Source of the DNA: Takakia lepidozioides
Taxonomy: Eukaryota > Plantae > Bryophyta
DNA length: 64,000 nucleotides
Assembly (NCBI GenBank): GCA_030704615.1
Contig: CM060732.1
Coordinates: forward strand, 45,012,001-45,076,000
Direction of reading: 5' to 3'
Positions 2,168 to 57,923 of the stretch are shown here, one piece after another. Under the pieces are notes generated by a model. It was not told where the DNA came from. It worked only from the letters and a program-made list of their open reading frames with translations, and did no database searches. Made by a program: the position numbers and the translations under genes. Positions within the stretch are counted from its first letter, which is position 1. Each line of letters starts with the position of its first letter.

Positions 2168-2977
2168 CATTGTTGGCCGGGTACCATGTTTTGAGCCCTC
2201 TTCCGGTCCCGGTTATGGCCTACTCCTTGAAAAAAGTGGATGGCCGGGGCAGGGTATAACAACAGGTTTGAAAAACATCTCGGTTACAGGTTCTAATTAA
2301 ACACATGAATTTTTTCTTGTCCGGTTCTCAATCTACCGGTTATGCCATCTTAAAAATTGCCGGTTCCATGGTACCGGTTATGGGATTCATCCATTTTTAC
2401 TTTTTTATTTTTTTCTAGCATTTTTGTGTATGTGTGTAAAACTACACAAGAGGGATGTGGCATGGTGGTAAGCCACTCATGTATTGGCCTGTGGGTCTCG
2501 GGTTCAAAAGTTCAACCCCTACCATCTATCTCTCTGCCTTCAGGCTGCCCCTGTAATACTCTAAGTTTATAACCATTGTTTTAGCCAAATGCTCAACTAA
2601 TTAATTTCCTATTTACTTGGGCATTCTCAATGTTGTGCACCTAATCTCCTCAACCATTGTAAACGTATTGTTACTAGTAAGACATAATCAGGATATGTCC
2701 ATATGCAATAATCTTAACTGCCATCACCAACCCCTATACCTATATTATCTAGAACCGCCTCTACGCCATGCACATTTGCTCTGGATCCTGCTCCGGGTAT
2801 AACACCCTTACAATTCCGATGCCGGTTGTCTAGCCGGTTAGGAAGCTCGATGGCTTTTGCCGGTTCCCTTCCATAGCCGGTTCCTCCTGGGGCTGCACTT
2901 TCCGGGTATGCATATGTGCATAACCGGCAAATAACTGTCGGGTATGCATGTGCAGATGCCATACCCGGCCAACACTG
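2168..2977. mobile_element. Non-autonomous hAT element (MITE-like), 810 bp
   Basis: TIRs CATTGTTGGCCGGGTA / TACCCGGCCAACACTG, 8-bp TSD GTACTAAC (2160-2167, 2978-2985), many CCGGTT/AACCGG subterminal motifs. Confidence 0.92.
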
Positions 2978-4989: not shown

Positions 4990-7900
4990 CCTCATACACA
5001 GCTGCGCAAGGCTCCCAGATTGGTTGTCTCCACTGCACCTGTCGTGTTCCACCAAGCCTCGATGATAGCAAACTTAACCTCCGCGTCATCAAATGTAGGT
5101 GCATCCTTCCACGCCGTACAAAGGACACGGTGTTCAACTTGGAATGAGCTAGCAACAAATTTGGTAGTGTAGTGAGATCCAATGGAATCCACAGGATGTC
5201 TCTTTCCCCTCCATTGGAACATTGGGGTCCTCACCGTACACACGCTGCACCGTTGCCCAGTTGGCCCGAGCGTTGTCTGCCATGAATCCCCTCAAATTGG
5301 GCTCTGGCAAACCTACCCTTGCCATCTGCTAGTTTATGCCCTCCCACAGATGCATCTCCGACTGTGTGTCCTCCCCTTTCATCTCCCAGATTGCAATCGT
5401 GATGAGCCTCTTGGAGTGATAGTTATAAACATGCGCACCCATGGTCACCCACTGATGGTTTGTAATTCACTTGATGTGGTCAAACATCACCCAAACATTC
5501 CAATTGTCATGCGAGTGACCAACTCGACTCGACTCCCAGGCCCATACGTTGACATTTTAAAAATGTAACAACGATCGGATTCGCTACCTTGCCTTGGAAA
5601 CCTGCTACCTTGGATGTAGTCATATCCAGTCCTCCGTTTCACCTCCAGGATTGAGTGCATGTCCGACACTCGGCCGAACTCCTGCTTGCAAGATACGATA
5701 TGATTCCGCATATTCGGACTACAAACGTGCGAGACGGACTCCAACAGGTCAAACATATCCTCTTCGTTCAAGGGCACTCGGTTTAAACCCTCTTCAGACA
5801 TGATTTTTCCAAGAGCAATCTTGTGGGCTACCTTGAGCTGAATATGCTTTGGTCAGGCTCCGGGGCTCAATTTCACCTCATCTTTTATGATGTCGTGTGC
5901 TTCCTGCAGAGCCTCCCGGATGTTGCATCTCACCAAAGGGTGGCAGTGGACCCCAACGTGTATGCAAGCTCTAGTCAAGTCCGGGAGCAAATGGATTACA
6001 TAATATTGCTTGGCTCTGCACATGGACATGCACGTCGGTGGTTCTTTGCAATGTGCGCACTTGAAAGTACCCGTCGGAGCTTGGCTGGAGACAATGAATG
6101 GATGATGGGTTGTGCCAATCCAATCCGTCTTGTTTCTCCGCCCTCCTTTGGAGAGAAAGTGGAAGCAGGGGGGATTGAGGCACTGCAACTTCCCCGCACA
6201 GAGGACGTATCGTACACGAACACCATCAGCAATTTTCGTGCTACTGGTCTTCGTCACACACCAGGGGTGTCCGTGATGCTTTCGATCCCTGTCTGTTAAC
6301 ATCCATGAGGCTTTGTTTGACGAAGTAACACGTGGAAACTCAAAGATCATATTACCATCGACTTCGAGAGGCAGATATGTTACCTTCATAACTGGAAATT
6401 TGGCATAGTCGAGAGCAGCCAGCTCGGAGCGAGAACCATCGAGGTGATGTTGCCGTAGGAGCTGCATAATGGACCGAGTTGGAGCTATGCTCGAGAGTAC
6501 ATGCGTAGCACCTGCAGAGACGTCCATGTCGGATTTGAACGACCGTGTGGAGGACATGGGGACCTCAATGCACTCATCTTCCTCGTCGGAAATGTCGAAT
6601 ACCTCCACACGAGAAGCTATGGAGGGTCTTGATGGTCCAGGTTGGGAATGATTATCGTTGCATACCTCTCTATTGGCAGTGGCCGCCTGTCGGTTTCCCG
6701 ACTCCTTTGTGAATGGTGTCGGAAGCGACTGATTCGGAAAGGGAATGGGCATTCCCACAGCTCGGTACAAGATGGTGTCTGATGGAGGTAAGTGCCACGC
6801 GATTCCGCAACCTCCGTCGTTACCTAGCACGACAATGGTCTCATCAACCTGTCCAGGAACATCCTTCCTTGCTTCTTCCAAATAAAGTGTGCCTGGTTTG
6901 AGCTTGAATTTGGAACAAAGGTAAGTTTCAGTCACTCCGCAAAGTCCTCCCTCGTTTGGGATCCTGGCTCTCCCAAGTTGCGGAGGACAGCAAACTATAG
7001 TGTATGAATTGGGAGCGATCGAACACCGCACGAAGTTGGCAAGTATGAGACAACAACAGACCAAGGCTTAGTGACACCACATAATTGGAATTGCCGAGGC
7101 CATCGACGATTGGAAGTCGCACATTGAAATCGAGCAGAATGTTTCAAGATACATGCATGAAGGTGGGAGGTGTGATTCCATATCCTATATGTATAACAAT
7201 GATGGCCATGTCGGCGACGAAATAACATCTCCTGACAGTTTTTCCTGAGGGTGGATCCAACAGTATTCTCGGTGCCGACATGAACGTTCACACTGACAAG
7301 TAGGCCTGGGCCCTAGCCTGAATCCACGGCGAACGCCATGCAGGACGGCCTGGAGGGAGTGCAGCTGCGATGGCGGCAGAGCTCGGGGCTCGAGAAAAAC
7401 GCCACGAGGGGTGGGCCAAACCTAGGGCGGGGGTTTGAGAGGGTTGAGGGTGGAGTGGCCCCCCATGAAAGCAAGGCCGGGTAGCCAGAGGAGCTCCCAA
7501 TCCCTGCGCCCTTCTGGGCTACGGCTCCAAATATCTTAGGCCTGCAAGCTATGTCAAAGGTGTGCCATTTGAAGTCTTGGGCAAGGAACCTAAGGATGCG
7601 GTGCATTGGCTGATTGGCCTCAAAGTTTTTCGGGGACTTCATATGGAAGCCCGTGACATTTCAACCGGAGGGTTAGGGATTGACTGGCGGCTGATTTTTT
7701 TTTGTATAATTTTAGGCAAAGAGATTTTGGCCTGCCCAAAGAAAATGGCATATTTTGACCCCCCAATTTGTCACTACAAAGGAGCCCACTAGAGAACATT
7801 TCAGAAAAAACTGAAATTTTATGAGGATGTGTGTTATCAGGTATGGAGCAACATTCTTGAGACTCTCAAACAGAAAAAATTAAAAATGCCCAAATACGAG

Positions 7901-8152
7901 CAAAAAAACTGCTTTTTTTGGCACCTAGTTCTTAGTGGAGATTTTTTTTGGTCCCCACTCTACACTTTATAATCTTCAGATCTGGCAGTTGGATTTTGGT
8001 GAAACTTTTTGTGGTAGGAGGTGGGGTAGGTGGAAAGTAATTCCAACGGTCAGTTTTACAGGGACACAGAGATTCTCTAGATAAAAAAAAAATTGTGGGC
8101 CAGAGTCATGTTTTTCCACGAGAGGGTGAAAATGAGTTTTGACACTTGAGGG
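4990..8152 (-). mobile_element. Decayed DNA transposon with GCM/WRKY-like Zn domain and MULE-type (D...CxxH) transposase
   Basis: ORF 5853-7064 has CAGKLQC..C...CAHC...C...HVGVHCHP. Downstream broken frames give MFDHIK...MGAHVY...EMKGED...LRGFMADNARANW...CGFHW...AIIEAWW. Putative terminus TTAA|CCCTCAAGTG at 8156-8143; other end not found. Confidence 0.75.
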
Positions 8153-10159
8153 TTAAGTGAATGTCGAACAAAGGTGTTGCAATTACAAGCAATGGTCAGT
8201 CCCATTTCAAATTGTATACCAAGCACAACCCATCACAACAGGAGGCCGTGGAGGCTTACAGCGGAGTCTCGTCTTGATGTTGTTGTCAGTGAAATACACA
8301 CTAATATACCTCTATGAAGGTAATTGCGACAGAACAGTTGCGAAGACACAAAATTCAAATTAAGTTTCCTTTTAATTTAATTCAACATTCTGTTATTCTC
8401 CTGTTCAAAAAGCATCTTCCAATCTTGAGATTCCCCGAAGGTCATCCATCTCCTCGGATGCATTCATTCATCCATGTATTGCTGGTTGGAGGAGAAGGGT
8501 ATGCTGGCAAACCCTCGCGAGTCCGAGTCTTCGCGACGTGAGTTGAGAGGAGCACGAATACCTCATAGTGATTCTGCAACCTGTGATCAGCAAGGTATGT
8601 GTTTCGATCTAGTCATATGCTTTCTTACCTTGCTTCTTATTTTTTTCTTCCTTTACACAATTGTTCGTCATCTGCTTGGTGCTTGCACTTCGCTGCATCA
8701 GTTTCCTCGAGTGCATATCCTCGGACGATATGTGTTGTACTGTTAACGCTATTTTTCTTTACTTCCTTGTCCTGTCTTTAAGGCTTCTGCGGTTACCCTA
8801 GCGGTTTTCGTTCCGACTACATATGTGTTATTTTGCTCGGGGTTTGTGGTCCGTGGTGTTTTCATGAGGGTATAGTCGCAACAATTGAAATGTCTAAGAT
8901 TCTTATTTATTTTCTCTCCTTTTTTTTCTATCCTATGGAGCATTTTCTGCCGACCTTGCCGTGCTGGCCTTTTGTTGTGCTGCAGTCCGCCGTTTGAACC
9001 GTTAGGATGCATACAATTCCCGTTTTTCATTTCCTGTCTTTTCTCGGAGGAACATCTTCCGCCTTGCAATACCCTCGTTTGGTCGGTGCCCCTTTGTGTT
9101 GAGTCTCGCTTTGGTGCGTGTGCGTGTCTGTGTTCCTAGTATAAATTGTCTCGCTAAGAGGGAGAGAAGAGGGGGGAGGGTATGGCAGCAGGGCCAGAGA
9201 GTGAGACCTACCGCAGGCCAATGTGAAGAGAATTGTGAAAGGGAAGCTTGCGGAGCTCGCCCGTGCGCACTGGGAGGAGAGAAGGATATTCCTGTGAATA
9301 AGGACGCTCTTCTTGCCTTCTCTGAAAGTGCCAAGATCTCATTCCACTTTTTTTCCGCAACGCACGTCTCTCTGTTTTGTCAAAGATATCTTCCCGCTCA
9401 TTTCTGACTCGCATTGTGTCCTGCCACAATCTCTCTGTGGCTTGTGTTTTTCTGTCTCTGCATGTGGCTCTTTGTTCTTTCTTCCACAACTAGATATGAA
9501 TCATAGAATGAATCAAAGGATGCTTGCTGTTCTTACCACCATCCCTGCGGATTAGACCTGATGTGTAGAAGTAGGCAAAAGACATTTCTGAAATGGGAAT
9601 CTGCATTGTTGTTGTCTTGGTTTTGTGTAGAGTATGATTGTGGCATACGTTGACATACATATCTTTTTAGGTACTTTGCTGTGCAGTTTATGAGAAAGTG
9701 AAATTAGGAACTTGAACAAGTGCAATTTGTTGCCTATTCTTCCCCTAGAGAACCTGAAAATCTCCTAGAGTCCACCAAAGCCATGCCCTTCTCCAAGCAA
9801 CTTATAACTCCTGCAGGATAAATCGGGTATTGTTTGACATTGTCATAGGTGTGCCATGACTTTGGTGTCTCGCAGGTATCTGGACCATCTCTTGTTAACT
9901 CCAGTACAAGTTGTTTGAGCACCAACCCTCTGCCCTCCCCGAATCAACTGACTCAGGTTGTCTTCCCCACACTGTGTCATAAGACAAAAACAAAGGTTGG
10001 TTTCCCTTCTTTTTTCCTTCACTGAATAATCTGGCTTAGAGTGAAGATCCCCACAGCCCCTGTTTCTCAGAAAGCCAGCTCGGCCTTTGTGGAAACAACC
10101 TCTAGTACCCAGATCGACCTCGAGACGAGTACTTATATCTCTGCAAAATATCTGCATTG

Positions 10160-11690
10160 AGAAGCGTGATGCCTTAAATAGTTCCCCAGCTCTTCTCTGT
10201 CACCTTTCTTGTGTAGATTGACAATGATCCCCTGTCGCAAAAGGGGATCATGTCAGTCCTCCAGATAAGGTTAAAGAGAAGTACAAGGGCCTCTATGATG
10301 GGGCCGCCACCCTGCTTGATTAGCTTGTTGACTATGCCATCAGGTCCACCAGCTCTATATCCGTGTAAATGCTCAATTGCTTCCACAATCTTAGAAGAAC
10401 TAATGGGAGCGTTGTAACCCTTTGAAATATACTCCAGGTCATCAGGGCTGTCTTGAATCGAAGGAACAGTTTTTTCCAAGTGCGTCTTTCCATTCTTCAA
10501 AGACCCCTCACAGCTAGAGCTAGAATGTTACCAAGGATACTGTAGTGAGTTTCAAAGGTTTGACAGTATCAACCATTGAAGTCACCACTCCACCCTTAGT
10601 AGTCCTCAGCGCTTGTACATGCTGACAAGTATAGACGTCGAAGGGCCAACCAGAATCCCTTGTCTTTACCACCATGGCGATTTGAGTTTATTTCATTGTA
10701 TAACTTGTCCCGGTATATATTTTCTTCTGAAACCTTACAAGCTGACTGTTATCTTGGCGGATCTGGTAGTACCTAGCCCACAATTTGTTTTGTTGACTTT
10801 CAAATTGCGGCAGTCTTTATAGAGGACTCGTCTCTCGGCTGAGTTTGATCTCATTGGTCCACCAATCAATAGCTCTACTGCAGACAACTAGTGTCCTCCT
10901 ATGATTCTGTCAGCCACAGAGGAGATGAAACTCTCCCAAGAATCCACAGCTCTTTTGACTTCATTTCTTGCACTGCCAGTCTTGGAGCGAATAGACAAAT
11001 TGAGGGAGAACCTGTTGCAAGGCCTGGACATATTCAGCCTTGACTCTTTCATTTTGGAAATTTTTGTATGTGCCACTTCCGAATCAAACATTTCACAGAT
11101 CTTTTGGTGTTGGGGAAACATGTTTTGATCTTTAGTCCAAACCAAGATGTGGTCAGAGGTACTAATATCAGTTCTGTCAATCAAACACACTGGCACTGTG
11201 GGGAAACAAACTCTTGTCCACAATGATACCTGTTCTGTTCGTAATATCAAACCATGCCGTAATGGTTTATCATGGATACCACGGTATCCCTTAAGCTTGG
11301 TAATCCACAATGGATGGTTCCTCAGTTTGGGCTTTCAGCTCAAAATGGGTGTTGAAATGATGAAGCTCCAAAAATATATTACAGTTTGGTAGGTCCATAA
11401 AATTGAGGATAGATGGGTAGATTCCCTTGTGATGTGTATGGAATTCAGCTTGTCAGCTTAAATGGGCATAAAGAACAGGTTGGTGGTTTTACAGGTCCAT
11501 TGCATTAGGTCTCCTTTTGACCTATTATTCAAGGTTGAAAGTTAAAGTTCTTTGGGACAGTTTATTTGACCGTCTTCCATTAGAAATTCAGTTCATCCTC
11601 ACCAAAAGGCCCAATGGTGGGGCATTGAAGTCACCCAATAAGACCACCTCACCTTTGACAAGGAACTTAGCACAGTTCAGCTGGCAATTT
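10160..11690 (-). mobile_element. Decayed APE-RT LINE fragment
   Basis: APE motifs VVLIGDFNA (~11625-11650) and TSDHILVW (ORF 10888-11310). RT N-terminus AGGPDGIVNKLIK..LFNLIW..IP..LHKKGDREELGNY (10170-10400). Truncated and frameshifted. Confidence 0.85.
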
Positions 11691-13219
11691 GATTGAGAGT
11701 AGGGGTCTATGTTCAATCACCACTTCTACTTTCCATATTGACATGTGTAAGCAACTGCAGGATGATGGCGGCCATGCGGGAGATTTCAGTGCGCTTTCAT
11801 GCTTTGGGTTTGCGAAGATTGGTGCCATCTAGGTTGTTCAGCTCCGATGATGTACCATCCGAGTCTGTGTACAAGAAGGTTGAGGAACTCGCTGCTGAGG
11901 TCTCAGAGCTGAAGATTCAATTGAAGAGGATGGTGGCTTGCGTGGATAGGATGTTGCCGGTTTATTCTATGATCTTGACGCGTTCCGCCTTGGGTACTCA
12001 CTGGGGGCGATCAGGAGTTCACGAGGACCCGTAGAATTGCTCTAAAAATAAGATGAGCTCCTCAGGACAGATGTCCTGAGGAACCCGTCTTACTTTTAGC
12101 GCAATTCTACACTGCCTGGTAGTGGAGTGATTTGTCCATTGGGGTGCACAGCAGGGGAGAAATGTATATAACAGAGATTGATGTTGGAGATACATGGCTG
12201 CATCCAGCCTATGTGCCCTGGCATCTGGTCACGTTGTAATTGGGGCAGGTTGGTCAAGCCCATGAGGAGACAGAGAACTGGAAGTGGAGATGCAAGCGGC
12301 TTAGCAAGGGGGTTGGGGGTTGGAAGCATGTCGAACTACTAGACATGCTGCACAGGACCAGCAAAAATCCAGCAAGCCTCCTCAAGCACTCCTGTGGTCC
12401 ATCTGTGCTGCCTGGCAGTGCCGTGAATCGGTGTCCCTTGCTGCTCACTGTCCTTGTGCCCAGCCACGTGCCATGGGTCCATTTATGTAGTACCAGCAGG
12501 GGAGGGAGGGGAGGGGAGAAGCAATGCGAGAGATGGAGAGACGCCACAACTTAGTTGCAAATAGCCTGCACCCCCTGGCATGTACTTTGCTGGTCCAATA
12601 TTGATGCTTGAGTGAGTGCGAGTGATTTGGGGGTGCTCATTCGTAGTAGGCAGAGAGAGAGTGCTACTGTAAGGTAGGGGTTGATGCATGCTGTTGTCCT
12701 TCGCGGGTCTTCTTGTACTGCAAGGCAGTGAAGTTGATGTGAGTCTGTGGCTCGTGAGTACATTTTCTAGGTGTCGCAATCAACGACCAAGCTCTTGTAT
12801 GCCCTGCTCTGCTCTGCTGTGCTGAATGTTGGTGAAGTGAAGCTGTGGTTCCGATATGGTAGATGTGTTGTGCAAGTCCAGCAACCATCCACGAAGCTTT
12901 CGATTGCAGGCCGCCTGTCCATAAACCATCCAAAGAACTGGAGTAAGAAGCGCATAACACTATGGTGTATTGAGGAAGGAGGCCTGGCTTGCAAGCAGAT
13001 GCCAGAGCCCATGGAAGAAGAAATTTATTGGCGACCAGCAGATGCTGCACATTGTGGAGGAGATAGGTGCAGCAGGTGTCTTCTTCCCTGGGACGACGGG
13101 AGTGACACCTGGGCTGCGGGTGAGGGAGGGATGAGAGATTCTGGGTTGCACTGCGACTTGAAGCGGGTTGGGGGAGAGAGGGGAAAAGTGCAGTGGTGGA
13201 GGCGGGGGTTGCACTTTGC

Positions 13220-15263
13220 GAGCGAGCATGTGCAGCAGCAGGGGTTGCAGGGGTATATGTTCTCGGACATAACCTTAAATTTTATGGGGAAGGACTATCC
13301 GCTCTATCGGATTATACTCTTGCAGTCTTCGTACTTCCATTTACTTCTCTCAGGCCCCTGGACAGAGTACAGAAAGCTGCAAATCGAACTGCAGATTGAT
13401 GACCCTTCTGTGAGCGCGGAGGGACTGGAGATTGCCTTCTCCTACATGTATGGTATGAGCCCAGTTTTCATTGGAGATAATGTGATGGCAGCACTGGTCG
13501 CAGGGTGTTTTTTGTTGGATGGAGTTCTGTGACAAGTGTGCAGTGCATTGTAGCCAACTTGAGGGTGGACACTTTTGTTGCTTAGAAGCAGCTGTCCGAG
13601 TGGCATTGCTATGGCTGGTTTGCCGACCTGATAAGAAATGCTTGTTGGACATTATTTGCCCGCATGCATCGCGCGAGGTCGTTCATCTCCTTCCAAAGCT
13701 TTCTTTGCAGGTGCTTCCCACCACTCCACTTCCCTCTTTACACCCCGCCATTCCACCTGATTTAGTAATCTCATCAGCCCCAAGTGTGGCATTCAATATG
13801 GTTGGGGCAATCTGCGGGTGTGCATGTGCATAGCCCTATCCAGGAAGGTCTTTCCATTGCAGTGAGGGTCAAGGTCGGTGGAATTTAGGGGTTGTATGTG
13901 TTGCTCTTGCACATGACTCTGAGTTTGTCATTCAGAATTCTCGGGTGATGTTGAATCTGAGAAGGAAAGAGGTGAACAAGCCTGAGACTCATGACGTGTT
14001 CATCTGGAGAGGAATAATTCACACTGTGCCTTCTAAACTTGGCGAATATGAGGATTCGTTGGGTGCATGTAGTCGGTTGGTCTTAATTACATCAATCGTG
14101 CCTGGAAGTGACATGGAATCTACTGGGGTCATGGAGGAGAATTCTAACGTGCTTGGCACTTGGATGGCACTTACTTCAGGAACCCATGTATGTCCAGATC
14201 TCACCGGATAATCATTGCTACTGAAGTCTTGAGTGGAGAATCATTTTGTCTGAGCTATAGTGATGTGTGCAGATATGTGTCAGTACAGTATCTGCAAAAT
14301 AAAACATTCTTAGGTCACGGGATATGAAATCCCCAGACGTAATTTCCATGTGGATGAAACATTTATGTTCTGGAAATTGGTGGTGAGGATTGGATTTTTG
14401 ACCCCCACCAGTTCGCAAGCATGGGGTCTGGGACACAAAAACATGCACTCATTTTGGCACAAAGATTGTCAGGCAGCACTTTTAATGAGGGAATTGTATG
14501 ATCATACTCTGAAGTGTGAGAGAAGTCAAGAATTTCTGAGGTGATGATGACTGAGACATCAAGAATTGTAGCTACAGCATCCAGTCAACGAATTTGCAGA
14601 TTACTTCATTACCTACAGAGGCAATGGTTTGTCTCTCCCTCTTAGTCATCATGGTTGCCACCTGTGAGAGAGATGATTAGTCACAACCCTTGTTACTTCC
14701 AGCTAGTGAAGCTGGTTTGGCACCTTACTAGGTGGACAACGCGTACAGAGAGACACAGGATAAAAAGGTGCATTGGCAGGGTTTTATGTGTGTCGGTGGG
14801 GGGTTGGATTTACCAGACAGACAGGTAGGTACTAAGAGGGACTGAATAATAATGCTTGTGTGGCTGATCTAGCTCGTTTGGGGAAATAGTCCTTGTGTAG
14901 GTGTTATGCAGGCTGTTGAAATCAGATGAACTGTGGGTTCTCAGTGAATCATAGTGCAGACTGGAAGTTAGCACGTGTGAAACCCACTGATTTTGTTTCA
15001 GAATGCCCAGGTGGAAAAGGTGAAAGGTCAACACTCACTCCAACGGGAAGGCTGCGTGGAATCTGACAGTCATGAGCAACAGCAACAAGAGAAACACAAT
15101 GAAGGCTGGGGCGATTGCAAAGGCTGAGAAGAAGTAAAGGGAGGCTGCTGCTGCTGCTGCTCTCCCATTGATAGAGGTGGCGAAGGAGGCCAGCTTGCAG
15201 ACAAATGAGGCTGTATATGAGACAGACCTAAAGAAGCTGCAGATGTTATGGGAGGTTGATTAG
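13220..15263 (+). pseudogene. BTB/POZ (germ cell-less-like) protein pseudogene
   Basis: FSDITLNFMGKDYPLYRIILLQSSYFHLLLSGPWTE...IDDPSVSAEGLEIAFSYMYG BTB, then BACK-like FCDKC..IVANL..RNACW. In-frame TAG at ~13583 in both copies plus frameshifts. 3' extent uncertain. Confidence 0.75.
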
Positions 15264-15312
15264 CCATTGAGAGGTGTGTGTATGTGTGTGTGTGTGTGTG
15301 TCTCTCTCTCTC

Positions 15313-15630
15313 GCCTATGTCCAGCTTGCATAGGGCGCTGCAAGGAAATTGAAACTGAAGAACACTTCTTCTACTGCCCTCTATACTACGAGATCCGTGG
15401 GAGATTTCACTGTTTATTCAGTGGAACCCAAACTCTCACTGATGTCTTTCACTATGAGGATCAAAAATGCGTGGCAGCCTACTTACAGGCCTTCACCCTT
15501 AGACAATCGCTAGAACATTAATTGTGGTTTCTGGATTTGTTCCTCTCTCATGTTTTCTTCCATTTTGTCCCATAAGCTCTACGAGCTTTCCGCGGACGTT
15601 ATAAAGCACCATTTCATTTCATTTCATTTC
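15313..15630 (+). mobile_element. 5'-truncated LINE tail (CCHC knuckle, 3' hairpin, (ATTTC)4 tail) in a CT microsatellite
   Basis: C..EIETEEHFFYCPLYYEIR knuckle, hairpin GTCC..AAGCTC-TAC-GAGCTT..GGAC, (ATTTC)n tail, tctctctc on both sides. Confidence 0.8.
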
Positions 15631-17137
15631 TCTCTCTCCCTCTGAAAATCCCGAGGCTGAGCCTACAGCCCTGGCACTGTTGGGGTCTAATTGCCGGGCA
15701 GCTCAGACACAGCAGATTTGTGTGAGGGCTTTCTAGAGGATATCTTGAAAGCCTGAACCAATTGTTTATATCAAGGTAAGCCATCCCACTACCGGAATGA
15801 GCCCTTCACAAAGGTAGTGTCTGTTCCCTCTTGTTCTGCCCACACTGGGTGCTGGGTCTGTGGCCACAAGGCTACAACAAACAACGTCTCATGTACATTG
15901 TCTCCTCTCGAGTACAGGACTTGTCCAATGGTACAAGTGGAGACAGAAGATCCTGTTTTCTTCTGGTGCCCTATTTTCTCGGAGATCCCTGGCAGAGGCC
16001 TTCAGGGGACCCAAAGAGCCCTGTATGAGACAGTCCTTGTGCAGCATTATTTTCCTTGCTCTTGGTTTCTGTGATACTGCACAGAGAGGAAAGGGAGCTT
16101 GCAATTGCCCATTGTGTGGGCAACCTGAAGACTATTCATTTTCTGATTCTTATTGTGTTCTCTCACCAGAGAGATGCTCTTTCAAGTTTACGAAGGGAAT
16201 TGTGCCTGTACCTCTGGTTATCAACTTTGAAAGAGTTGATGCTGACCAAAAGCCCAGGCCCTTTTTGGGCCCCAAACCACATACAGCAGGTTGACGCATC
16301 TGGAAAGGGATTTCTAGAGGATAGCTGGGAAACCTAGATCAATAATTGTTTATTCAAAGGTAAGTCTTACTAACGGCATCAGCCTTTGACAAACGTAGGT
16401 TCTGCCCCTTTGTGTTCCGCTCAAACCGGGCGCGGGGTCAATGGCCACAAGGCTAACAAAAACAACGTCTATGAGTACATTCTCTATCTATGTCCCGTGC
16501 TGATACTGGAAGGCTATAGCAGCAGTGGTTTAATGAACGTCATACTCTGCACGATCGATGCTCTCTAGTATGAATAATACTCTTTCCCTTCGAACCTGCT
16601 TGCTGGCTGGTATATCAGTGGGCTCAACCCCCCCAACCAGGTATGTCATATCAAACGTTCGCAGGAACGATGGGGATACACAGAGGCGGTCATAGCAAGG
16701 AGATGTGAAAACAGATGTGCAGGACATCGACATTGGGGTTGAATAAACAAACAGAAGAAACGTCAGGCAGTGAACAAGTGACACACACAAATGCTGCTGA
16801 ATAGATGAGGATCAGGGATTGTGGAAGTACAGAAAGATCAGGGAGCTGCAATTAGCACTCGAGAAACTCAACTACCAACACCTAATCCCCATTGAAGCAA
16901 CGAAGCAACCTATATCCAGACAGAGCAAGCAACACTGGTAACGGTAAGAGTAGAGAGACAATGGCATACGATTGACCTGCCAAAACCAAAGAGAGAGGAC
17001 GCTGACAGGGGCCTATGAATGGCAGTATCGAGTATCGAATTTGACCTCTGCTTCAGACTCGAGCTACCGAGTCTTGTTCTGGAAATTTTCCTTTGCCATC
17101 CAGTATTCCTCATGATCCCTGCAAAGACAGCACTGAT

Positions 17138-17163
17138 GGGTTTAGGGTTTAGGGTTTAGGGTT
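17138..17163 (+). repeat. Interstitial telomeric repeat GGG(TTTAGGG)3TT at the duplication junction
   Basis: gatgggtttagggtttagggtttagggttcagac; absent at both parental sites (391-410 and 33971-33990). Confidence 0.95.
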
Positions 17164-18661
17164 CAGACTTCTTGGTCCTGCCACCATATTACGTGTTGAA
17201 CTTATGGCCATCTTCGAAGCACTTTATCTGATAGATGCATTCCCTCTTTCATACTACATCTTTACAGATAACCTTACCTCACTGTTGCTTATCCGGAATC
17301 ACATCTTCCGTCCCTCCTCCCACCATCATCACCCAGACTGCAACCTCAATACAACCATTGTCAACCTCGTTATTTCCAAGGGCCACCATGTCCACCTCCT
17401 CAAGGTTTGCTCACACACTAGCATCCAGGGTGATGAGGCTGTGGACATGTTTGCTCAAACATGCACCTCTAAACCCCCAGTGGACTCCACAGACGATCCT
17501 ATTCACATTGCTCATACCCGTCCCTTCTGGTTCATACACCCAGTCCCAGATCCCCCCACACCCAGACCGTCCGTAATCTTATGACCACTCACACCCGTGG
17601 AGCTAACAAACAAGCCATAACATCTATAAGCCACACCAAAGTCACATTCAGAAAAGGACCCAGTCCATAGTCCTCCATCATGAGCTATCAAACCACTTTT
17701 GGCACACCAAAGCCACTACTGATGCACAAATCCGATAAACACTCAAATTCAGATACATCCAATACATGGGCCACCAGCGTAAACACATCTTCTGGCCACA
17801 TCTTTTCCCATCCCTATATTGCCTATTATGCTCAAATACCCACCATACGCGACACCTGGCCACACCTCCTTAGCCAATGTACCCATCCAATCATTCATGG
17901 CTTTCATATCACCCTCCACAATTACACAGTCTGGCAGATCTATAAACTCCTTCTGAGCCGCGCTGAAAGCAGGTGGTTCTCATTCATTAACGCCAGCACC
18001 TACCAAGGCCGACTGCCAGACCACACTCTACCACCATGGTTGCTCCCATGTACATGTACCCGCCCACCATGCACCTGCCCCGCCAGACTCTGCCCTGATA
18101 TTCTACTTGTCCAAGGCCTACCCACTAACACCCCACCACCCACTACACCATCCCCACAACTCACCATCCACTTCATCAAATTTACATATTGTCATGATCG
18201 CTACCCCAATGACTCGATCTTGGAAAAACGACAAAAATATGTTTTGCTCATCCTTGCAATTCGCCGTACGGGCTGGATTACCGGCCCACTAACTGTCATC
18301 ACTACCAGAATTAGAGGCCGCATACATAATGCCAGTATCAACGTTATACATAACAACTTCAAAATCCCCATCCCCCATTCATAAATGTTTCAAAACAATC
18401 CACCTCACGGCACTCCGATCCTTCACAGCTATTATTACCAACAAACGGCAACTGGAATCCAACTCTACATCGGTACCCTAGGTACCTAGGGTACCGCTGG
18501 GTCCCTTACGATACCATAAATGCCTCTATACCCTCGGTTACTTGGTGTCCTACATGACACCTATTCTCTTATAGGGCCCACCCCCGAAAGGGGGCAGTAG
18601 CCGTAAGGTGAAGTGGCTCTTAATTATGTCGGCTTCGGCCGGAATCTTCTCTCTCTCTCTC
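17163..18661 (+). mobile_element. Duplicated copy of the Dualen-like LINE 3' part
   Basis: ORFs 17204-17584 and 17680-18384 match copy 1 (one N/S difference); same 3' cassette. Confidence 0.8.
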
Positions 18662-18932
18662 AAGACAATGCACATTGCAAACTGTCGTGGGAGATAAACA
18701 GTGTCTTTGTCAGAATTGCCAAGTGGGGGGCAAGAGATGAAAGCGTTGGCCAAGGCTTTCACTAGCGGATATACACAGCTCACCATGGATACCGGACGAT
18801 TGAGATGAGAGGAACATTTCAAGTGGGAATGAAAGTTTGTAATCGCAGTGATGATTACCAATAAAGAGGCACACATCTACAAACTACAAACCTACTTGCC
18901 TTTTGTCCTGTTGCTCCATCTTAGGTACTAAC

Positions 18933-19737
18933 CATTGTTGGCCGGGTACCATGTTTTGAGCCCTCTTCCGGTCCCGGTTATGGCCTACTCCTTGAAAAAA
19001 GTGGATGGCCGGGGCAGGGTATAACAACAGGTTTGAAAAACATCTCGGTTACAGGTTCTAATTAAACACATGAATTTTTTCTTGTCCGGTTCTCAATCTA
19101 CCGGTTATGCCATCTTAAAAATTGCCGGTTCCATGGTACCGGTTATGGGATTCATCCATTTTTACTTTTTTACTTTTTTCTAGCATTTTTGTGTATGTGT
19201 GTAAAACTACAAAGGGATGTGGCATGGTGGTAAGCCACTCATGTATTGGCCTGTGGGTCTCGGGTTCAAAAGTTCAACCCCTACCATCTGTCTCTCTGCC
19301 TTCAGGCTGCCCTGTAATACTCTAAGTTTATAACCATTGTTTTAGCCAAATGCTCAACTAATTAATTTCCTATTTACTTGGGCATTCTCAATGTTGTGCA
19401 CCTAATCTCCTCAACCATTGTAAACGTATTGTTACTAGTAAGACATAATCAGGATATGTCCATATGCAATAATCTTAACTGCCATCACCAACCCCTATAC
19501 CTATATTATCTAGAACCGCCTCTACGCCATGCACATTTGCTCTGGATCCTGCTCCGGTATAACACCCTTACAATTCCGATGCCGGTTGTCTAGCCGGTTA
19601 GGAAGCTCGATGGCTTTTGCCGGTTCCCTTCCATAGCCGGTTCCTCCTGGGGCTGCACTTTCCGGGTATGCATATGTGCATAACCGGCAAATAACTGTCG
19701 GGTATGCATGTGCAGATGCCATACCCGGCCAACACTG
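18933..19737. mobile_element. Non-autonomous hAT element, duplicate copy
   Basis: Same TIRs and GTACTAAC TSD (18925-18932, 19738-19745). Confidence 0.92.
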
Positions 19738-21749
19738 GTACTAACCGCATTGTATGTTATACTTGGAGATGCAGGGCCTTGCTGGTACCAGTACCAACTA
19801 AGTTAGGTTGATACATCAACTTGGATAGGCTATCGCCACCACAGTAGCCATGACTGTTGTGTAGTGGCTGGGCGGCAGGGACATGACAATTTGTGAGTGC
19901 AGCTGGAATGATGGGACCTACTCTTGTGCACTTCTGAATCTAATTAACAACCCACTGTACCTGCTACCCACCTTCTTAGGTCAAATTGCAGATGATGAAT
20001 CATAAAGACAAACGGATAGCTCTGGATTGATACCACAATGGATGACCATGAACTTAAATACTTAGAATCTGTGGTTTCCTTTTCATGGAAAAGAGGAACG
20101 CATGTGCTTCCACTGAGTAGCAAACTCTTCCCACACGCATCTTCCTTCTTACTTCTGTGACTGCCCGCCACCCTCAAATCTGAGGTGGGACTCCAGGTGG
20201 CTACTAACCGAATGGTGGCTAGGTACAAATGTTCACCCCAGACTGCGTAGTATTGAAGTGTACAAAAAATTATGAATACAAGATAGATGAATGAAGGCAC
20301 TAGTTGGGAGCTGGAAGGCTGTTAATTTACCCAAAGTTTGAAATCCATCTGCAGCGGGCATGGGCAGCAACTTCGCATGTAGCTGCCAAGGCCATGCATG
20401 TAATCTTCCTTGAGTGTAACATCTTGCAATGTCTCATAAGAGCTTTACACTGTAATGACCAATGGTGAGATAGTTATGCTTGTCATATGCCAGCCCCCCA
20501 CACCCTCCTCTTTCTCACTGCCTTTCCAGTCTGTCATAATTGAGCCATGATACCATAGCACACATCATCAATGTGTTGGTCTGCGTCCATCTCAGCTGCC
20601 TCAGCTGCTTAGGCATCTTCAAGCAGAGTCTGAGGCTGCACTAAAGCTTAAACAACATTTGAGAGGAAGAGACATTCAAAATTTATCATCACACCTACAT
20701 TTTGCAACTCAAAATAGTTGTTTTTCCCTGAGGAGATGCAATTCATGGCTGTATGTAAATCGTAACCAAGAGGGCCACGTGACCAAAGATCACTCATCAC
20801 TATCATCAATGTCCACACAGTCTTTCACCAGCTGCTTCTGCCGGACAGCAGCCTCTAGCTGGCGGAGCTCATCTATGCCCTGCCATAACCTTCTATCACT
20901 AACAAGCTTGCTTTCCATTAGCCGCGCACTGCAGCCTGTGTACAAAAATAATTCACTCACTCAAAATAAAGTGCAGAACAGATTGATGCAAACAGCTCTA
21001 CTTACTCCTGTAGAGCTCAAGTGAGGAACAACCTCAAACTCTAAAGAATTTTGGCAAACAAGATCAAAAGAGCCATGGCTTCCTCATGACACTTAGTACC
21101 TAATATATTCACCTAATATTCAAAAACAGGAAAAAAAGAAAAACCCACCAGCACTCTAACTGCACATCTCAATGAAAGAACAAAGAGGGAACTTTGTAAG
21201 GTCCATGAAATACCATAAAGAGCTTACGGATAGTCACATAAGAAACAAAGAAACAAGAAACAAGTACAAACTAGACGAGACATCATCACTTTTCCTTCCA
21301 CTATCAATCTTAATTGCACCCTTAAGATATCCACAATTTTTATATCCTTGAGTTTAGGATATAAGATAGGTGGAAACATTACCTGCAGCGGCACATTGAC
21401 ACGAACCCTCTGTTTTGTGCCTCGCTAAGTAGCTTGTGGCCACCCCTCGATCATAAATATGATGACAATCCTCACAGCAGTTCATTCCAAGCTTAATCCA
21501 GGTACCTGATGGTCCAACTCTCAACATGATGGCCCAACGCTTCTTCGCTTCTTGAGGAAGAACTATACCATAGGATGGTCCAAAGCTCAAGTTCTTCCGA
21601 AAGAAAGCAGCCGAGGGTTCTTGGGCAATTCAAGAAAACTGTGATCAGTAATCTCTGATATCATCATTGAAGATGCCTTTCTACCCTACACTTCCATTCA
21701 TTTATTTTGTGCTTCCCTATCTCAGACTGGTTGGCTACATGTCTTGTTC

Positions 21750-24700
21750 CCTCATACACAGCTGCGCAAGGCTCCCAGATTGGTTGTCTCCACTGCACCT
21801 GTCGTGTTCCACCAAGCCTCGATGATAGCAAACTTAACCTCCGCGTCATCAAATGTAGGTGCATCCTTCCACGCCGTACAAAGGACACGGTGTTCAACTT
21901 GGAATGAGCTAGCAACAAATTTGGTAGTGTAGTGAGATCCAATGGAATCCACAGGATCTCTCTTTCCCCTCCATTGGAACATTGGGGTCCTCACCGTACA
22001 CACGCTGCACCGTTGCCCAGTTGGCCCGAGCGTTGTCTGCCATGAATCCCCTCAAATTGGGCTCTGGCAAACCTACCCTTGCCATCTGCTAAGTGTGGGA
22101 ACAGATTCATCCAAGAGGGCCAGATTTCAAGCACAAGATTACCTATGATTCCCTGTGGCTCAATAGCTTTATGCCCTCCCACAGATGCATCTCCGACTGT
22201 GTGTCCTCCCCTTTCATCTCCCAGATTGCAATCGTGATGAGCCTCTTGGAGTGATAGTTATAAACATGCGCACCCATGGTCACCCACTGATGGTTTGTAA
22301 TTCACTTGATGTGGTCAAACATCACCCAAACATTCCAATTGTCATGCGAGTGACCAACTCGACTCGACTCCCAGGCCCATACGTTGACATTTTAAAAATG
22401 TAACAACGATCGGATTCGCTACCTTGCCTTGGAAACCTGCTACCTTGGATGTAGTCATATCCAGTCCTCCGTTTCACCTCCAGGATTGAGTGCATGTCCG
22501 ACACTCGGCCGAACTCCTGCTTGCAAGATACGATATGATTCCGCATATTCGGACTACAAACGTGCGAGACGGACTCCAACAGGTCAAACATATCCTCTTC
22601 GTTCAAGGGCACTCGGTTTAAACCCTCTTCAGACATGATTTTTCCAAGAGCAATCTTGTGGCTACCTTGAGCTGAATATGCTTTGGTCAGGCTCCGGGGC
22701 TCAATTTCACCTCATCTTTTATGATGTCGTGTGCTTCCTGCAGAGCCTCCCGGATGTTGCATCTCACCAAAGGGTGGCAGTGGACCCCAACGTGTATGCA
22801 AGCTCTAGTCAAGTCCGGGAGCAAATGGATTACATAATATTGCTTGGCTCTGCACATGGACATGCACGTCGGTGGTTCTTTGCAATGTGCGCACTTGAAA
22901 GTACCCGTCGGAGCTTGGCTGGAGACAATGAATGGATGATGGGTTGTGCCAATCCAATCCGTCTTGTTTCTCCGCCCTCCTTTGGAGAGAGAAAGTGGAA
23001 GCAGGGGGGATTGAGGCACTGCAACTTCCCCGCACAGAGGACGTATCGTACACGAACACCATCAGCAATTTTCGTGCTACTGGTCTTCGTCACACACCAG
23101 GGGTGTCCGTGATGCTTTCGATCCCTGTCTGTTAACATCCATGAGGCTTTGTTTGACGAAGTAACACGTGGAAACTCAAAGATCATATTACCATCGACTT
23201 CGAGAGGCAGATATGTTACCTTCATAACTGGAAATTTGGCATAGTCGAGAGCAGCCAGCTCGGAGCGAGAACCATCGAGGGTGATGTTGCCGTAGGAGCT
23301 GCATAATGGACCGAGTTGGAGCTATGCTCGAGAGTACATGCGTAGCACCTGCAGAGACGTCCATGTCGGATTTGAACGACCGTGTGGAGGACATGGGGAC
23401 CTCAATGCACTCATTTCCTCGTCGGAAATGTCGAATACCTCCACACGAGAAGCTATGGAGGGTCTTGATGGTCCAGGTTGGGAATGATTATCGTTGCATA
23501 CCTCTCTATTGGCAGTGGCCGCCTGTCGGTTTCCCGACTCCTTTGTGAATGGTGTCGGAAGCGACTGATTCGGAAAGGGAATGGGCATTCCCACAGCTCG
23601 GTACAAGATGGTGTCTGATGGAGGTAAGTGCCACGCGATTCCGCAACCTCCGTCGTTACCTAGCACGACAATGGTCTCATCAACCTGTCCAGGAACATCC
23701 TTCCTTGCTTCTTCCAAATAAAGTGTGCCTGGTTTGAGCTTGAATTTGGAACAAGGTAAGTTTCAGTCACTCCGCAAAGTCCTCCCTCGTTTGGGATCCT
23801 GGCTCTCCCAAGTTGCGGAGGACAGCAAACTATAGTGTATGAATTGGGAGCGATCGAACACCGCACGAAGTTGGCAAGTATGAGACAACAACAGACCAAG
23901 GCTTAGTGACACCACATAATTGGAATTGCCGAGGCCATCGACGATTGGAAGTCGCACATTGAAATCGAGCAGAATGTTTCAAGATACATGCATGAAGGTG
24001 GGAGGTGTGATTCCATATCCTATATGTATAACAATGATGGCCATGTCGGCGACGAAATAACATCTCCTGACAGTTTTTCCTGAGGGTGGATCCAACAGTA
24101 TTCTCGGTGCCGACATGAACGTTCACACTGACAAGTAGGCCTGGGCCCTAGCCTGAATCCACGGCGCAAACGCCATGCAGGGCGGCCTGGAGGGAGTGCA
24201 GCTGCGATGGCGGCAGAGCTCGGGGCTCGAGAAAACGCCACGAGGGGTGGGCCAAACCTAGGGCGGGGGTTTGAGAGGGTTGAGGGTGGAGTGGCCCCCC
24301 ATGAAAGCAAGGCCGGGTAGCCAGAGGAGCTCCCAAACCCTGCGCCCTTCTGGGCTACGGCTCCAAATATCTTAGGCCTGCAAGCTATGTCAAAGGTGTG
24401 CCATTTGAAGTCTTGGGCAAGGAACCTAAGGATGCGGTGCATTGGCTGATTGGCCTCAAAGTTTTTCGGGGACTTTCATATGGAAGCCCTGATTTCAACC
24501 GGAGGTTAGGGATTGACTGGCGGCTGATTTTTTTTGTATAATTTTAGGCAAAGAGATTTTGGCCTGCCCAAAGAAAATGGCATATTTTGACCCCCCAATT
24601 TGTCACTACAAAGGAGCCCACTAGAGAACATTTCAGAAAAAACTGAAATTTTATGAGGATGTGTGTTATCAGGTATGGAGCAACATTCTTGAGACTCTCA

Positions 24701-24982
24701 AACAAAAAAAATTAAAAATGCCCAAATACGAGCAAAAAACTGCTTTTTTTGGCACCTAGTTCTTAGTGGAGATTTTTTTGGTCCCCACTCTACACTTTAT
24801 AATCTTCAGATCTGGCAGTTGGATTTTGGTGAAACTTTTTGTGGTAGGAGGTGGGGTAGGTGGAAAGTAATTCCAACGGTCAGTTTTACAGGGACACAGA
24901 GATTCTCTAGATAAAAAAAAAATTGTGGGCCAGAGTCATGTTTTTCCACGAGAGGGTGAAAATGAGTTTTGACACTTGAGGG
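21750..24982 (-). mobile_element. Duplicate of the GCM/MULE-like transposon, with extra frameshifts and a 75-bp insertion
   Basis: Homologous to 4990-8152; TTAA at 24983-24986. Confidence 0.75.
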
Positions 24983-26989
24983 TTAAGTGAATGTCGAACA
25001 AAGGTGTTGCAATTACAAGCAATGGTCAGTCCCATTTCAAATTGTATACCAAGCACAACCCATCACAACAGGAGGCCGTGGAGGGCTTACAGCGGAGTCT
25101 CGTCTTGATGTTGTTGTCAGTGAAATACACACTAATATACCTCTATGAAGGTAATTGCAGACAGAACAGTTGCGAAGACACAAAATTCAAATTAAGTTTC
25201 CTTTTAATTTAATTCAACATTCTGTTATTCTCCTGTTCAAAAAGCATCTTCCAATCTTGAGATTCCCCGAAGGTCATCCATCTCCTCGGATGCATTCATT
25301 CATCCATGTATTGCTGGTTGGAGGAGAAGGGTATGCTGGCAAACCTCGCGAGTCCGAGTCTTCGCGACGTGAGTTGAGAGGAGCACGAATACCTCATAGT
25401 GATTCTGCAACCTGTGATCAGCAAGGTATGTGTTTCGATCTAGTCATATGCTTTCTTACCTTGCTTCTTATTTTTTTCTTCCTTTACACAATTGTTCGTC
25501 ATCTGCTTGTGCTTGCACTTCGCTGCATCAGTTTCCTCGAGTGCATATCCTCGGACGATATGTGTTGTACTGTTAACGCTATTTTTCTTTACTTCCTTGT
25601 CCTGTCTTTAAGGCTTCTGCGGTTACCCTAGCGGTTTTCGTTCCGACTACATATGTGTTATTTTGCTCGGGGTTTGTGGTCCGTGGTGTTTCATGAGGGT
25701 ATAGTCGCAACAATTGAAATGTCTAAGATTTCTTATTTTATTCTCTCATTCTATCCTATGGAGCATTTCTGCCGACCTTGCCGTGCTGGCCTTTGTTGTG
25801 CCTGCAGTCCGCCCGTTTGAACCGTAGGATTGCATACAATCCCCGTTTTCATTTCCTTGTCTTTTCTCGGATGGAACATCTTCCGCCTTGCAATACCCTC
25901 GTTTGGTCGGTGCCCCCTTTGTGTTGAGTCTCGCTTGGTGCGTGTGCGTGTCTGTGTTCCTAGTATAAATTGTCTCGCTAAGAGGGAGAGAAGAGGGGGG
26001 GGGAGGTATGGCAGCAGGGCCAGAGAGTGAGACCTACCGCAGGCCAATGTGAAGAGAATTGTGAAAGGGAAGCTTGCGGAGCTCGCCCGTGCGCACTGGG
26101 AGGAGAGAAGGATATTCCTGTGAATAAGGACGCTCTTCTTGCCTTCTCTGAAAGTGCCAAGATCTTCATCCACTTTTTTTCCGCAACGCACGTCTCTCTG
26201 TTTTGTCAAAGATATCTTCCCGCTCATTTTCTGACTCGCATTGTGTCCTGCCCACAATCTCTACTGTGGCTGTGTTTTTCTGTCTCTGCATGTGGGCTTC
26301 TTTCGTTCTTTCTTCCACAACTAGATATGAATCATAGAATGAATCAAAGGATGCTTGCTGTTCTTACCACCATCCCTGCGGATTAGACCTGATGTGTAGA
26401 AGTAGGCAAAAGACATTTCTGAAATGGAATCTGCATTGTTGTTGTCTTGGTTTTGTGTAGAGTATGATTGTGGCATACGTTGACATACATATCTTTTTAG
26501 GTACTTTGCTGTGCAGTTTATGAGAAAGTGAAATTAGGAACTTGAACAAGTGCAATTTGTTGCCTATTCTTCCCCTAGAGACCTGAAATCTCCTAGAGTC
26601 CACCAAAGCCATGCCCTTCTCCAAGCAACTTATAACTCCTGCAGGATAAATCGGGTATTGTTTGACATTGTCATAGGTGTGCCATGACTTTGGTGTCTCG
26701 CAGGTATCTGGACCATCTCTTGTTAACTCCAGTACAAGTTTTTGAGCACCAACCCTCTGCCCTCCCCGAATCAACTGACTCAGGTTGTCTTCCCCACACT
26801 GTGTCATAAGACAAAAACAAAGGTTGGTTTCCCTTCTTTTTTCCTTCACTGAATAATCTGGCTTAGAGTGAAGATCCCCACAGCCCCTGTTTCTCAGAAA
26901 GCCAGCTCGGCCTTTGTGGAAACAACCTCTAGTACTCCAGATCGACCTCGAGACGAGTACTATATCTCTGCAAAATATCTGCATTGAGA

Positions 26990-28517
26990 AGCGTGATGCC
27001 TTAATAGTTCCCCAGCTCTTCTCTGTCACCTTTCTTGTGTAGATTGACAATGATCCCCTGTCGCAAAAGGGATCATGTCAGTCCTCCAGATAAGGTTAAA
27101 GAGAAGTACAAGGGCCTCTATGATGGGGCCGCCACCCTGCTTGATTAGCTTGTTGACTATGCCATCAGGTCCACCAGCTCTATATCCGTGTAAATGCTCA
27201 ATTGCTTCCACAATCTTAGAAGAACTAATGGGAGCGTTTGTAACCCTTTGAAATATACTCCAGGTCATCAGGGCTGTCTTGAATCGAAGGAACAGTTTTT
27301 TCCAAGTGCGTCTTTCCATTCTTCAAAAGACCCCTCACAGCTAGAGCTAGAATGTCTACCAAGGATACTGTAGTGAGTTTCAAAGGTTTTGACAGTATCA
27401 ACCATTGAAGTCACCACTCCACCTTAGTAGTCCTCAGCGCTTGTACATGCTGACAAGTATAGACGTCGAAGGGCCAACCAGAATCCCTTGTCTTTACCAC
27501 CATGGCGATTTGAGTTTATTTCATTGTATAACTTGTCCCGGTATATATTTTCTTCTGAAACCTTACAAGCTGACTGTTATCTTGGCGGATCTGGTAGTAC
27601 CTAGCCCACAATTTGTTTTGTTGACTTTCAAATTGCGGCAGTCTTTATAGAGGACTCGTCTCTCGGCTGAGTTTGATCTCATTGGTCCACCAATCAATAG
27701 CTCTACTGCAGACAACTAGTGTCCTCCCTATGATCTTGTCAGCCACAGAGGAGATGAAACTCTCCCAAGAATCCACAGCTCTTTTGACTTCATTTCTTGC
27801 ACTGCCAGTCTTGGAGCGAATAGACAAATTGAGGGAGAACCTGTTGCAAGGCCTGGACATTCAGCCTTGACCTCTTCATTTTGGAAATTTTTGTATGTGC
27901 CACTTCCGAATCAAACATTTCACAGATCTTTTGGTGTTGGGGAAACATGTTTTGATCTTTAGTCCAAACCAAGATGTGGTCAGAGGTACTAATATCAGTT
28001 CTGTCAATCAAACACACTGGCACTGTGGGGAAACAAACTCTTGTCCACAATGATACCTGTTCTGTTCGTAATATCAAACCATGCCGTAATGGTTTATCAT
28101 GGATACCACGGTATCCCTTAAGCTTGGTAATCCACAATGGATGGTTCCTCAGTTTGGGCTTTCAGCTCAAAATGGGTGTTGAAATGATGAAGCTCCAAAA
28201 ATATATTACAGTTTGGTAGGTCCATAAAATTGAGGATAGATGGGTAGATTCCCTTGTGATGTGTATGGAATTCAGCTTGTCAGCTTAAATGGGCATAAAG
28301 AACAGGTTGGTGGTTTTACAGGTCCATTGCATTAGGTCTCCTTTTGACCTATTATTCAAGGTTGAAAGTTAAAGTTCTTTGGGACAGTTTATTTGACCGT
28401 CTTCCATTAGAAATTCAGTTCATCCTCACCAAAAGGCCCAATGGTGGGGCATTGAAGTCACCCAATAAGACCACCTCACCTTTGACAAGGAACTTAGCAC
28501 AGTTCAGCTGGCAATTT
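26990..28517 (-). mobile_element. Duplicate of the APE-RT LINE fragment
   Basis: ORFs 27026-27319 and 27790-28137 match copy 1. Confidence 0.85.
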
Positions 28518-32085: not shown

Positions 32086-32134
32086 CCATTGAGAGGTGTG
32101 TGTATGTGTGTGTGTGTGTGTGTGTCTCTCTCTC

Positions 32135-57676: not shown

Positions 57677-57740
<64 letters not shown>

Positions 57741-57879: not shown

Positions 57880-57923
<44 letters not shown>

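Follow-up and report, generated by a model that had tools for sequence, protein, structure and literature searches.

How does a short run of perfect telomere repeats come to lie at the seam between two copies of a tandem duplication in the assembly of a plant chromosome? The question is raised by a 64,000-nucleotide stretch of the Takakia lepidozioides genome (GCA_030704615.1, CM060732.1, positions 45,012,001-45,076,000, + strand), which is referred to below as the window and to which all coordinates apply. Two head-to-tail copies of one unit are joined here by exactly 21 bases, and these bases consist of TTTAGGG, the plant-type telomere unit; the window itself is plant DNA, as it carries a PLS-type PPR gene. 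The favoured answer, which we rate as an even call, is that a break was extended by a telomerase-type reaction and then joined to another end, which produced a tandem duplication of 16.7 kb.

Anatomy of the duplication and its junction

Self-BLAST of the window aligned positions 398-5331 with 17163-22091 at 99.35% identity and positions 5330-17141 with 22164-33979 at 98.75% identity, both in direct orientation. The period between the copies is 16,765 bases, and no other repeat of comparable size was found in the window. The copies are adjacent and direct and their outer flanks are native according to both self-BLAST and MAFFT, which is the arrangement of a tandem segmental duplication. The elements that define it are the following:

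398..17141, + strand: copy 1 of the unit, 16,744 bases, with a native left flank at 1-397 (self-BLAST, MAFFT, RNase H frame intact across 398)
17138..17141, + strand: native GGGT seed that closes copy 1 on its 3' side and matches the register of the added repeats; also present at 33976-33979
17142..17162, + strand: filler TTAGGGTTTAGGGTTTAGGGT, 21 bases, three perfect TTTAGGG units, G-rich on the + strand and found at neither parental site
17163..33979, + strand: copy 2 of the unit, 16,817 bases, with a native right flank from 33980 (self-BLAST, MAFFT)
397..401, + strand: CTCAG at the left breakpoint of the parental sequence, the same five bases as at 33980-33984
33980..33984, + strand: CTCAG directly after the native right breakpoint, identical to 397-401

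Both parental sequences are preserved in the window. The unbroken start of the unit reads GGGCATCGCCC followed by TCAGACTT, with the T at 398 (the left side ends in ATCGCCC), and the unbroken end reads CACTGATGGGT followed by CTCAGTTTG, with the T at 33979. At the junction the order is GCACTGATGGGT, then TTAGGGTTTAGGGTTTAGGGT, then TCAGACTTCTTGG, the right side beginning with TCAGACTT. An earlier, sequence-only reading had described about 21 nucleotides of TTTAGGG filler found at neither parental site, a GGGT seed supplied by the native flank and a one-base T microhomology at the right join. Direct reading of the three sites, together with self-BLAST, bears out its coordinates and its wording of the duplication and junction in every detail: the filler is exactly 21 bases long (17142-17162), the seed lies at 33976-33979 and the T is shared between 17163 and 398.

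The tract has the features of a short interstitial telomeric sequence (ITS): (i) perfect plant-type units at the junction and no tract at the parental sites 398 and 33979; (ii) an in-register seed, the GGGT of 17138-17141 being the same as that of 33976-33979; (iii) a G-rich strand that prolongs the 3' end of the upstream fragment. The probability of four in-register seed bases arising by chance is 1/256. The T at 17141 can be assigned either to the native sequence or to the telomeric repeat and the T at 17163 likewise, and perfect telomeric register spans 26 bases (17138-17163); the TCAG after the tract keeps the register with one mismatch. Since the + strand carries the TTTAGGG units immediately downstream of copy 1, the units prolong the left fragment at its 3' end, and no other end was open to extension by telomerase. 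The tract is not accompanied by bases from outside the telomerase RNA template that would argue for this enzyme.

No template for the filler longer than 14 bases exists elsewhere in the 64-kb window, where the next-longest telomere-like runs are 14, 11 and 9 bases long, at 40075, 42904 and 40094, respectively. Among 100 shuffles of the window no match to the tract was obtained, even when three mismatches were allowed. The self-BLAST check found no run of N in the window. What the data show directly is thus how the junction is built, in which register and on which strand the repeats stand, and that no local template exists.

A further property of the breakpoints had escaped the sequence-only reading, namely that both parental sites carry CTCAG. 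For random position pairs, with offsets of -1 to +1, such sharing is expected in about 0.4% of cases (p about 0.004). A plain microhomology join of the two sites would read GGGT-CTCAG-ACTT, whereas in the actual junction the C is replaced by the 21 telomeric bases.

The left breakpoint lies within a mobile element, present in both copies:

1..about 1900 (approximate end), + strand: 3' part of a non-LTR (long terminal repeat) retroelement, which enters from the left edge of the window (Pfam RNase_H, translation)
17163..18665 (approximate end, about 1900 plus the 16,765 period), + strand: the same retroelement in copy 2, colinear with 398-1900 at >99% identity

The RNase H domain of this element is located at about 325-696 (Pfam RNase_H, E = 4e-8), with the breakpoint at 398 inside it. 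Because the reading frame is unbroken across 398, the left flank of copy 1 is the native one; the start of copy 2 falls in mid-domain. The element in copy 2 is accordingly truncated on its 5' side by the junction. No recognisable gene has been found around the right breakpoint.

Short-read contigs, copy differences and the origin of the junction

The reads compared with the assembly came from one sample, S1 (four runs), and from one plant metagenome run, X5, all in the form of short-read contigs. The S1 contigs were compared over 14200-20100 (5,901 bases), and their depth was not taken as copy number. In two of the S1 runs, X3 and X4, contigs of 210 bases cover 16932-17141 in full and end exactly at 17141, which is the last base common to the junction and to the native flank. 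For contigs of a few hundred bases the chance of ending on one exact base is about 1%. The native flank alone, or the junction alone, would have carried such a contig onward; the stop at 17141 therefore implies that the S1 read graph branches at this base into two continuations. The branch gives no frequency for the junction, and the same contigs also begin at 16932, a start that is unexplained.

The two copies differ in a way that has to be considered before any reading of the junction is accepted. The difference that most clearly looks real is an indel:

22093..22167, + strand: 75 bases present only in copy 2 (self-BLAST, MAFFT)

The MAFFT alignment of the copies contains 87 indel runs, 63 of them of a single base, and 16 isolated substitutions, of which 12 are transitions. 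The indels are unevenly distributed, with 8 runs in 398-5331 (1.6 per kb) versus 79 thereafter (6.7 per kb over 11.8 kb), and the jump in density falls exactly at the 75-base indel (5331/5332; 22092-22167). Polishing or assembly may have differed between these two parts of the unit. The 75-base indel, of which 66 bases are about 89% like repeats at 62751-62817 (- strand) and 63235-63300 (+ strand), and several indels of 3 to 7 bases look real, unlike sequencing noise. Over 14200-14946 the S1 contigs side with copy 2 at most of the indel differences, and elsewhere long reading frames are whole in copy 1 and broken in copy 2; errors are therefore present in both copies, the outcome to be expected if near-identical repeats are passed over in short-read polishing. 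Of the 12 isolated transitions, ten show A/T in copy 1 and nine lie at CG or CHG sites (p = 0.04), a pattern that fits either methyl-cytosine miscalls or real deamination. Two distinct copies exist, and the age of the event cannot be read from the assembly.

The proposed course of events would begin with a free 3' end at GATGGGT, created by a double-strand break or by a collapsed replication fork. Telomerase would pair with the GGGT and add three TTTAGGG units, after which the end would fail to grow into a stable new telomere. Instead it would be joined 16.7 kb upstream, in the same orientation, at TCAGACTT in the RNase H region of the retroelement, through one base of microhomology or through T.AG with one mismatch. 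The partner in this join would probably be the sister chromatid or DNA that had already been replicated, and the interval between the two points would thereby come to be present twice. A one-ended break at a failed fork, re-primed on the sister strand, needs fewer assumptions than two breaks on two chromatids, and 16.7 kb fits the size class of fork-derived tandem duplications. As for telomerase as the enzyme, the type of break, the partner molecule and the germline status, these we infer. As part of this account, the genuineness of the 16.7-kb head-to-tail duplication in the plant chromosome is held with moderate confidence. Its fuller version, a "neotelomere fusion" fixed in the plant germline, in which healing was started by telomerase and the barely capped end was joined behind itself to give the 16.7-kb duplication, is offered tentatively, as something a little less than an even prospect.

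Several observations weigh against this account. Telomerase action followed by blunt joining does not predict the CTCAG shared by the breakpoints, which suggests partner choice guided by microhomology or a series of template switches, and which may also be coincidence. The healing-then-joining scheme of the sequence-only reading is supported in part: its anatomy fits, with GGGT extended in register, a join 16.7 kb upstream and no template in the window, and the CTCAG at both breakpoints is a hint of a microhomology-guided join or of template switching in place of a plain blunt join. Sequence alone does not separate telomerase from a polymerase that copied a telomeric template. No junction-spanning read or contig is found among the S1 contigs listed, and their depths are uneven, from about 80-156 in the head of the unit versus about 150-600 in its tail (a ratio of about 1.5 to 4). 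At positions 16971, 16978 and 16998 the S1 contigs read T, A and A, while both assembled copies read A, T and G; in the X5 run both versions occur at similar depth. S1 may come from another individual than the assembled one; alternatively, both copies in the assembly may have one of two natural variants. Finally, the differences between the copies mostly look like an unpolished long-read consensus, and for this reason their true divergence, and hence the age of the event, is uncertain.

The same seam may be explained by a real duplication in which the filler was laid down by a repair polymerase, through polymerase theta end joining or through template switching of the type called microhomology-mediated break-induced replication (MMBIR) or fork stalling and template switching (FoSTeS). 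The GGGT end would anneal to a C-rich telomeric template, offered by a telomere, an interstitial tract or extrachromosomal telomeric DNA, copy about 21 bases and then switch to the upstream site. Such a course agrees with the microhomology seen at the left join (GGGT) and at the right join (T or T.AG) and with the CTCAG common to the parental breakpoints, which is typical of microhomology-guided switching; telomere insertions with microhomology in cancer have also been ascribed to end joining or microhomology-mediated repair (PMC7002710). Templated fillers, however, are usually copied from DNA near the break, and in the 64-kb window the other telomere-like runs (14, 11 and 9 bases) lie 6-9 kb from the break and offer no suitable template of the kind polymerase theta uses, though a more remote template may have served. 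A whole number of perfect in-register units is moreover the outcome expected of telomerase, and in-register seeds are the published argument for that enzyme (PMC2246262). The repair-polymerase explanation is judged quite unlikely. A further explanation, unlikely as well but less so, accepts the junction as real and denies the germline duplication: a minority somatic rearrangement, or a circle of 398-17141 with one end extended by telomerase before closure, would have been unrolled by the assembler. The junction of a circle and that of a tandem duplication are the same sequence. This explanation accounts for the raw-consensus error pattern in both copies (about 6.7 indels per kb over 11.8 kb), for the uneven depth and for the lack of a spanning contig among those listed, and a low-frequency variant can create a branch in a k-mer graph. 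Against it stand the 75-base indel and several multi-base indels between the copies, and also the few indels and clean substitutions in the head (398-5331), as if short reads had separated the copies there; errors moreover occur in both copies, as expected if short-read polishing passes over true repeats.

A purely computational origin, through false haplotype duplication or a wrong contig join at a chromosome end, is very improbable. The assembly is indeed noisy here, and the PPR gene in the unique flank is frameshifted. An overlap of haplotigs, however, would not create 21 new bases and is rejected; two joined chromosome ends would read TTTAGGG then CCCTAAA with long arrays, so that neither the strand pattern nor the short length of the tract agrees with such a join; no run of N is present, and the S1 short-read graph branches exactly at 17141. 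The tract is likewise too short and too internal to be a chromosome end, since 21-26 telomeric bases are followed by chromosomal DNA and the distal flank is retained from 33980. A random ligation chimera formed in vitro is ruled out by a partner 16.7 kb away in the same orientation, and Hi-C ligation at the CTCAG (C^TNAG) sites would leave a fill-in signature, which is absent. Capture of a promoter telo-box was also considered and set aside, the telo-box runs of the window being at most 14 bases long. The least probable explanation, scarcely credible with its two forms taken together, is a process driven by a retroelement. In one form a read-through transcript that starts in the non-LTR element would have given rise to copy 2 as a 5'-truncated retrocopy; in the other the tract would have been made by the reverse transcriptase of telomere-attaching Penelope-like elements. 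The left breakpoint does lie inside a sense-oriented retroelement, as in 5' truncation, and the CTCAG microhomology resembles the 5' junctions of long interspersed nuclear elements (LINEs). On the other side, the copy runs 15 kb beyond the 3' end of the element and stops exactly at the end of its own template, without a tail and without intron loss, which, together with polarity, disfavours a retrocopy with a 15-kb transduction: a telomere-primed cDNA would set the 3' end of the element, not its 5' end, against the repeats. In a discrete, telomere-attached insertion of an endonuclease-less Penelope-like element or a telomere-specific LINE, a terminus of the element would touch the repeats; here the tract abuts the middle of the RNase H domain, its right side is colinear with copy 1 over 16.7 kb, and no Penelope-like sequence adjoins it.

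Because the strand pattern is that of one extended end, 21 bases are new, no N is present and the partner lies on the same strand 16.7 kb away, the seam was almost certainly made inside a cell, either as a duplication or as a fragment of 398-17141 closed into a circle. Telomerase-type extension followed by end joining remains the account that is preferred for it.

Further content of the unit and its flanks

Besides the retroelement, the following reading frames have been identified in the unit and in the right flank:

12771-13529: BTB-domain frame in the unit (Pfam)
5856-7064, - strand: 403-residue Cys/His-rich open frame with no Pfam match
36938-38926, - strand: PLS-type PPR reading frame, intronless (Pfam)
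41146-42645: thiamine-pyrophosphate enzyme frame (Pfam)

The Cys/His-rich frame, perhaps part of a transposon, is intact in copy 1, whereas copy 2 has it in three separate frames. Pfam analysis of further open reading frames (ORFs) of the unit gave only the RNase H and BTB matches, and an Rfam search of 1-36000 gave no RNA family. Exact-product look-ups of the RNase H tail ORF, of both versions of a 234-residue retroelement ORF and of a 46-residue ORF that ends inside the tract returned no record. A protein search with the BTB-domain ORF gave one distant relative, on a contig without DNA similarity to the window, and the left flank, used as an exact pattern, had no match in Joint Genome Institute (JGI) metagenome contigs.

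The duplicated unit also includes a very high-copy repeat family at 15185-16563, with its equivalent in copy 2 at 31990-33400. Over 15185-16563 the summed depth of the S1 contigs reaches 3-4 x 10^5 versus a few hundred alongside, with many internal joints.

In the right flank, the PPR frame is lost just before the E motif, in the region to about 36600, and YVLLSNIYATAGRWD appears in another frame; either the gene is a pseudogene or an indel error has been left in this unique sequence. Telo-box-like motifs of 14 and 9 bases (40075-40102) and of 11 bases (42904-42914) flank the thiamine-pyrophosphate enzyme frame. Repeats of several kinds occur towards the right end of the window: a cluster of tandem or dispersed repeats of about 45-50 bases with 93-96% identity (57676-57924), and an inverted repeat of about 240 bases with 90% identity (62615-62853 / 63196-63436), to which the direct pieces 61343-61673 and 62849-63176 are related. 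The 66-base piece found within the 75 bases specific to copy 2 belongs to the inverted-repeat family at 62.7-63.3 kb.

Comparison with known systems

If reads confirm the junction, the locus would provide a clean natural case, from neither vertebrates nor tumours, in which telomerase acted on an internal break before the break was rejoined, and it would tie this action to the birth of a sizeable tandem duplication. The presence of both parental sequences in one window, which is rare, allows the event to be reconstructed base by base. A genome-wide screen for junctions with in-register telomere units could gauge telomerase against end joining in plants, and should further short TTTAGGG tracts at junctions of this genome prove real, structural change in this lineage may repeatedly stem from telomerase action at internal breaks. 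In the literature, as far as it was covered, no report has been found, in plants or elsewhere, of a tandem duplication whose seam is made of in-register telomere units.

Chromosome healing, of which PMC2246262 gives a summary, is the de novo addition of a telomere at a short G-rich seed. The junction resembles it in the seeded, in-register addition of repeats to a broken 3' end. In healing, however, the outcome is a long terminal array and loss of the distal part, whereas here three units are followed by chromosomal DNA and the distal flank is kept. A second point of comparison is offered by tandem duplications of about 10 kb at stalled forks, for which Willis et al. (Nature, 2017) reportedly described closure through end joining or through template switching. 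Both share their size class, their head-to-tail order, the little microhomology and the occasional insertions; telomeric filler is not known as a feature of the fork-stall duplications.

A close likeness is found in primates and rodents, where short telomeric tracts have been inserted at repaired double-strand breaks (Nergadze et al. 2007, PMC2246262). As in those insertions, the tract consists of a few perfect units absent from the empty site, and the break was rejoined, not capped. The main argument for telomerase in that study was the one to eight in-register bases at the 3' end; the strongest mammalian evidence, flanks derived from the telomerase RNA, is absent here. In the mammalian events the ends that were rejoined came from a single break, with nothing beyond small deletions or target-site duplications, in contrast to the present locus, a plant one with TTTAGGG units, where the extended end was joined 16.7 kb upstream and a large tandem duplication is found.

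In tumours, telomeric tracts bridge two fragments as two-sided insertions and microhomology is frequent (Sieverling et al. 2020, PMC7002710), and fusions of neotelomeres have been described in cancer genomes (Tan et al. 2024, PMC11293586). A telomeric tract that bridges fragments at a structural-variant junction is common to these cases and to Takakia, and the texts of both papers do not use the term "tandem duplication" for such bridges. The cancer cases are somatic, often associated with alternative lengthening of telomeres (ALT) and often have longer tracts, unlike the present one, which comes from a plant assembly and is presumably germline.

In the fungus Magnaporthe oryzae, relics of MoTeR elements that bear telomere repeats mark segmental-duplication borders (Rahnama et al. 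2020, PMC7367193). There, as here, a short internal telomere tract marks a duplication boundary, and it was read as a record of break repair at chromosome ends. The fungal tracts occur with telomere-specific retrotransposons and terminal duplications, whereas no telomeric element adjoins the Takakia tract, and the distances from the site to the two ends of the sequence piece are at least 7.6 Mb and at least 37.7 Mb. The claim of the sequence-only reading that aborted healing would become a new generator of segmental duplications is therefore overstated, since telomere tracts at rearrangements and duplication borders have already been described (PMC2246262, PMC7002710, PMC11293586, PMC7367193). 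No new category is opened by the Takakia junction, which joins the known telomere tracts at repair junctions and duplication borders.

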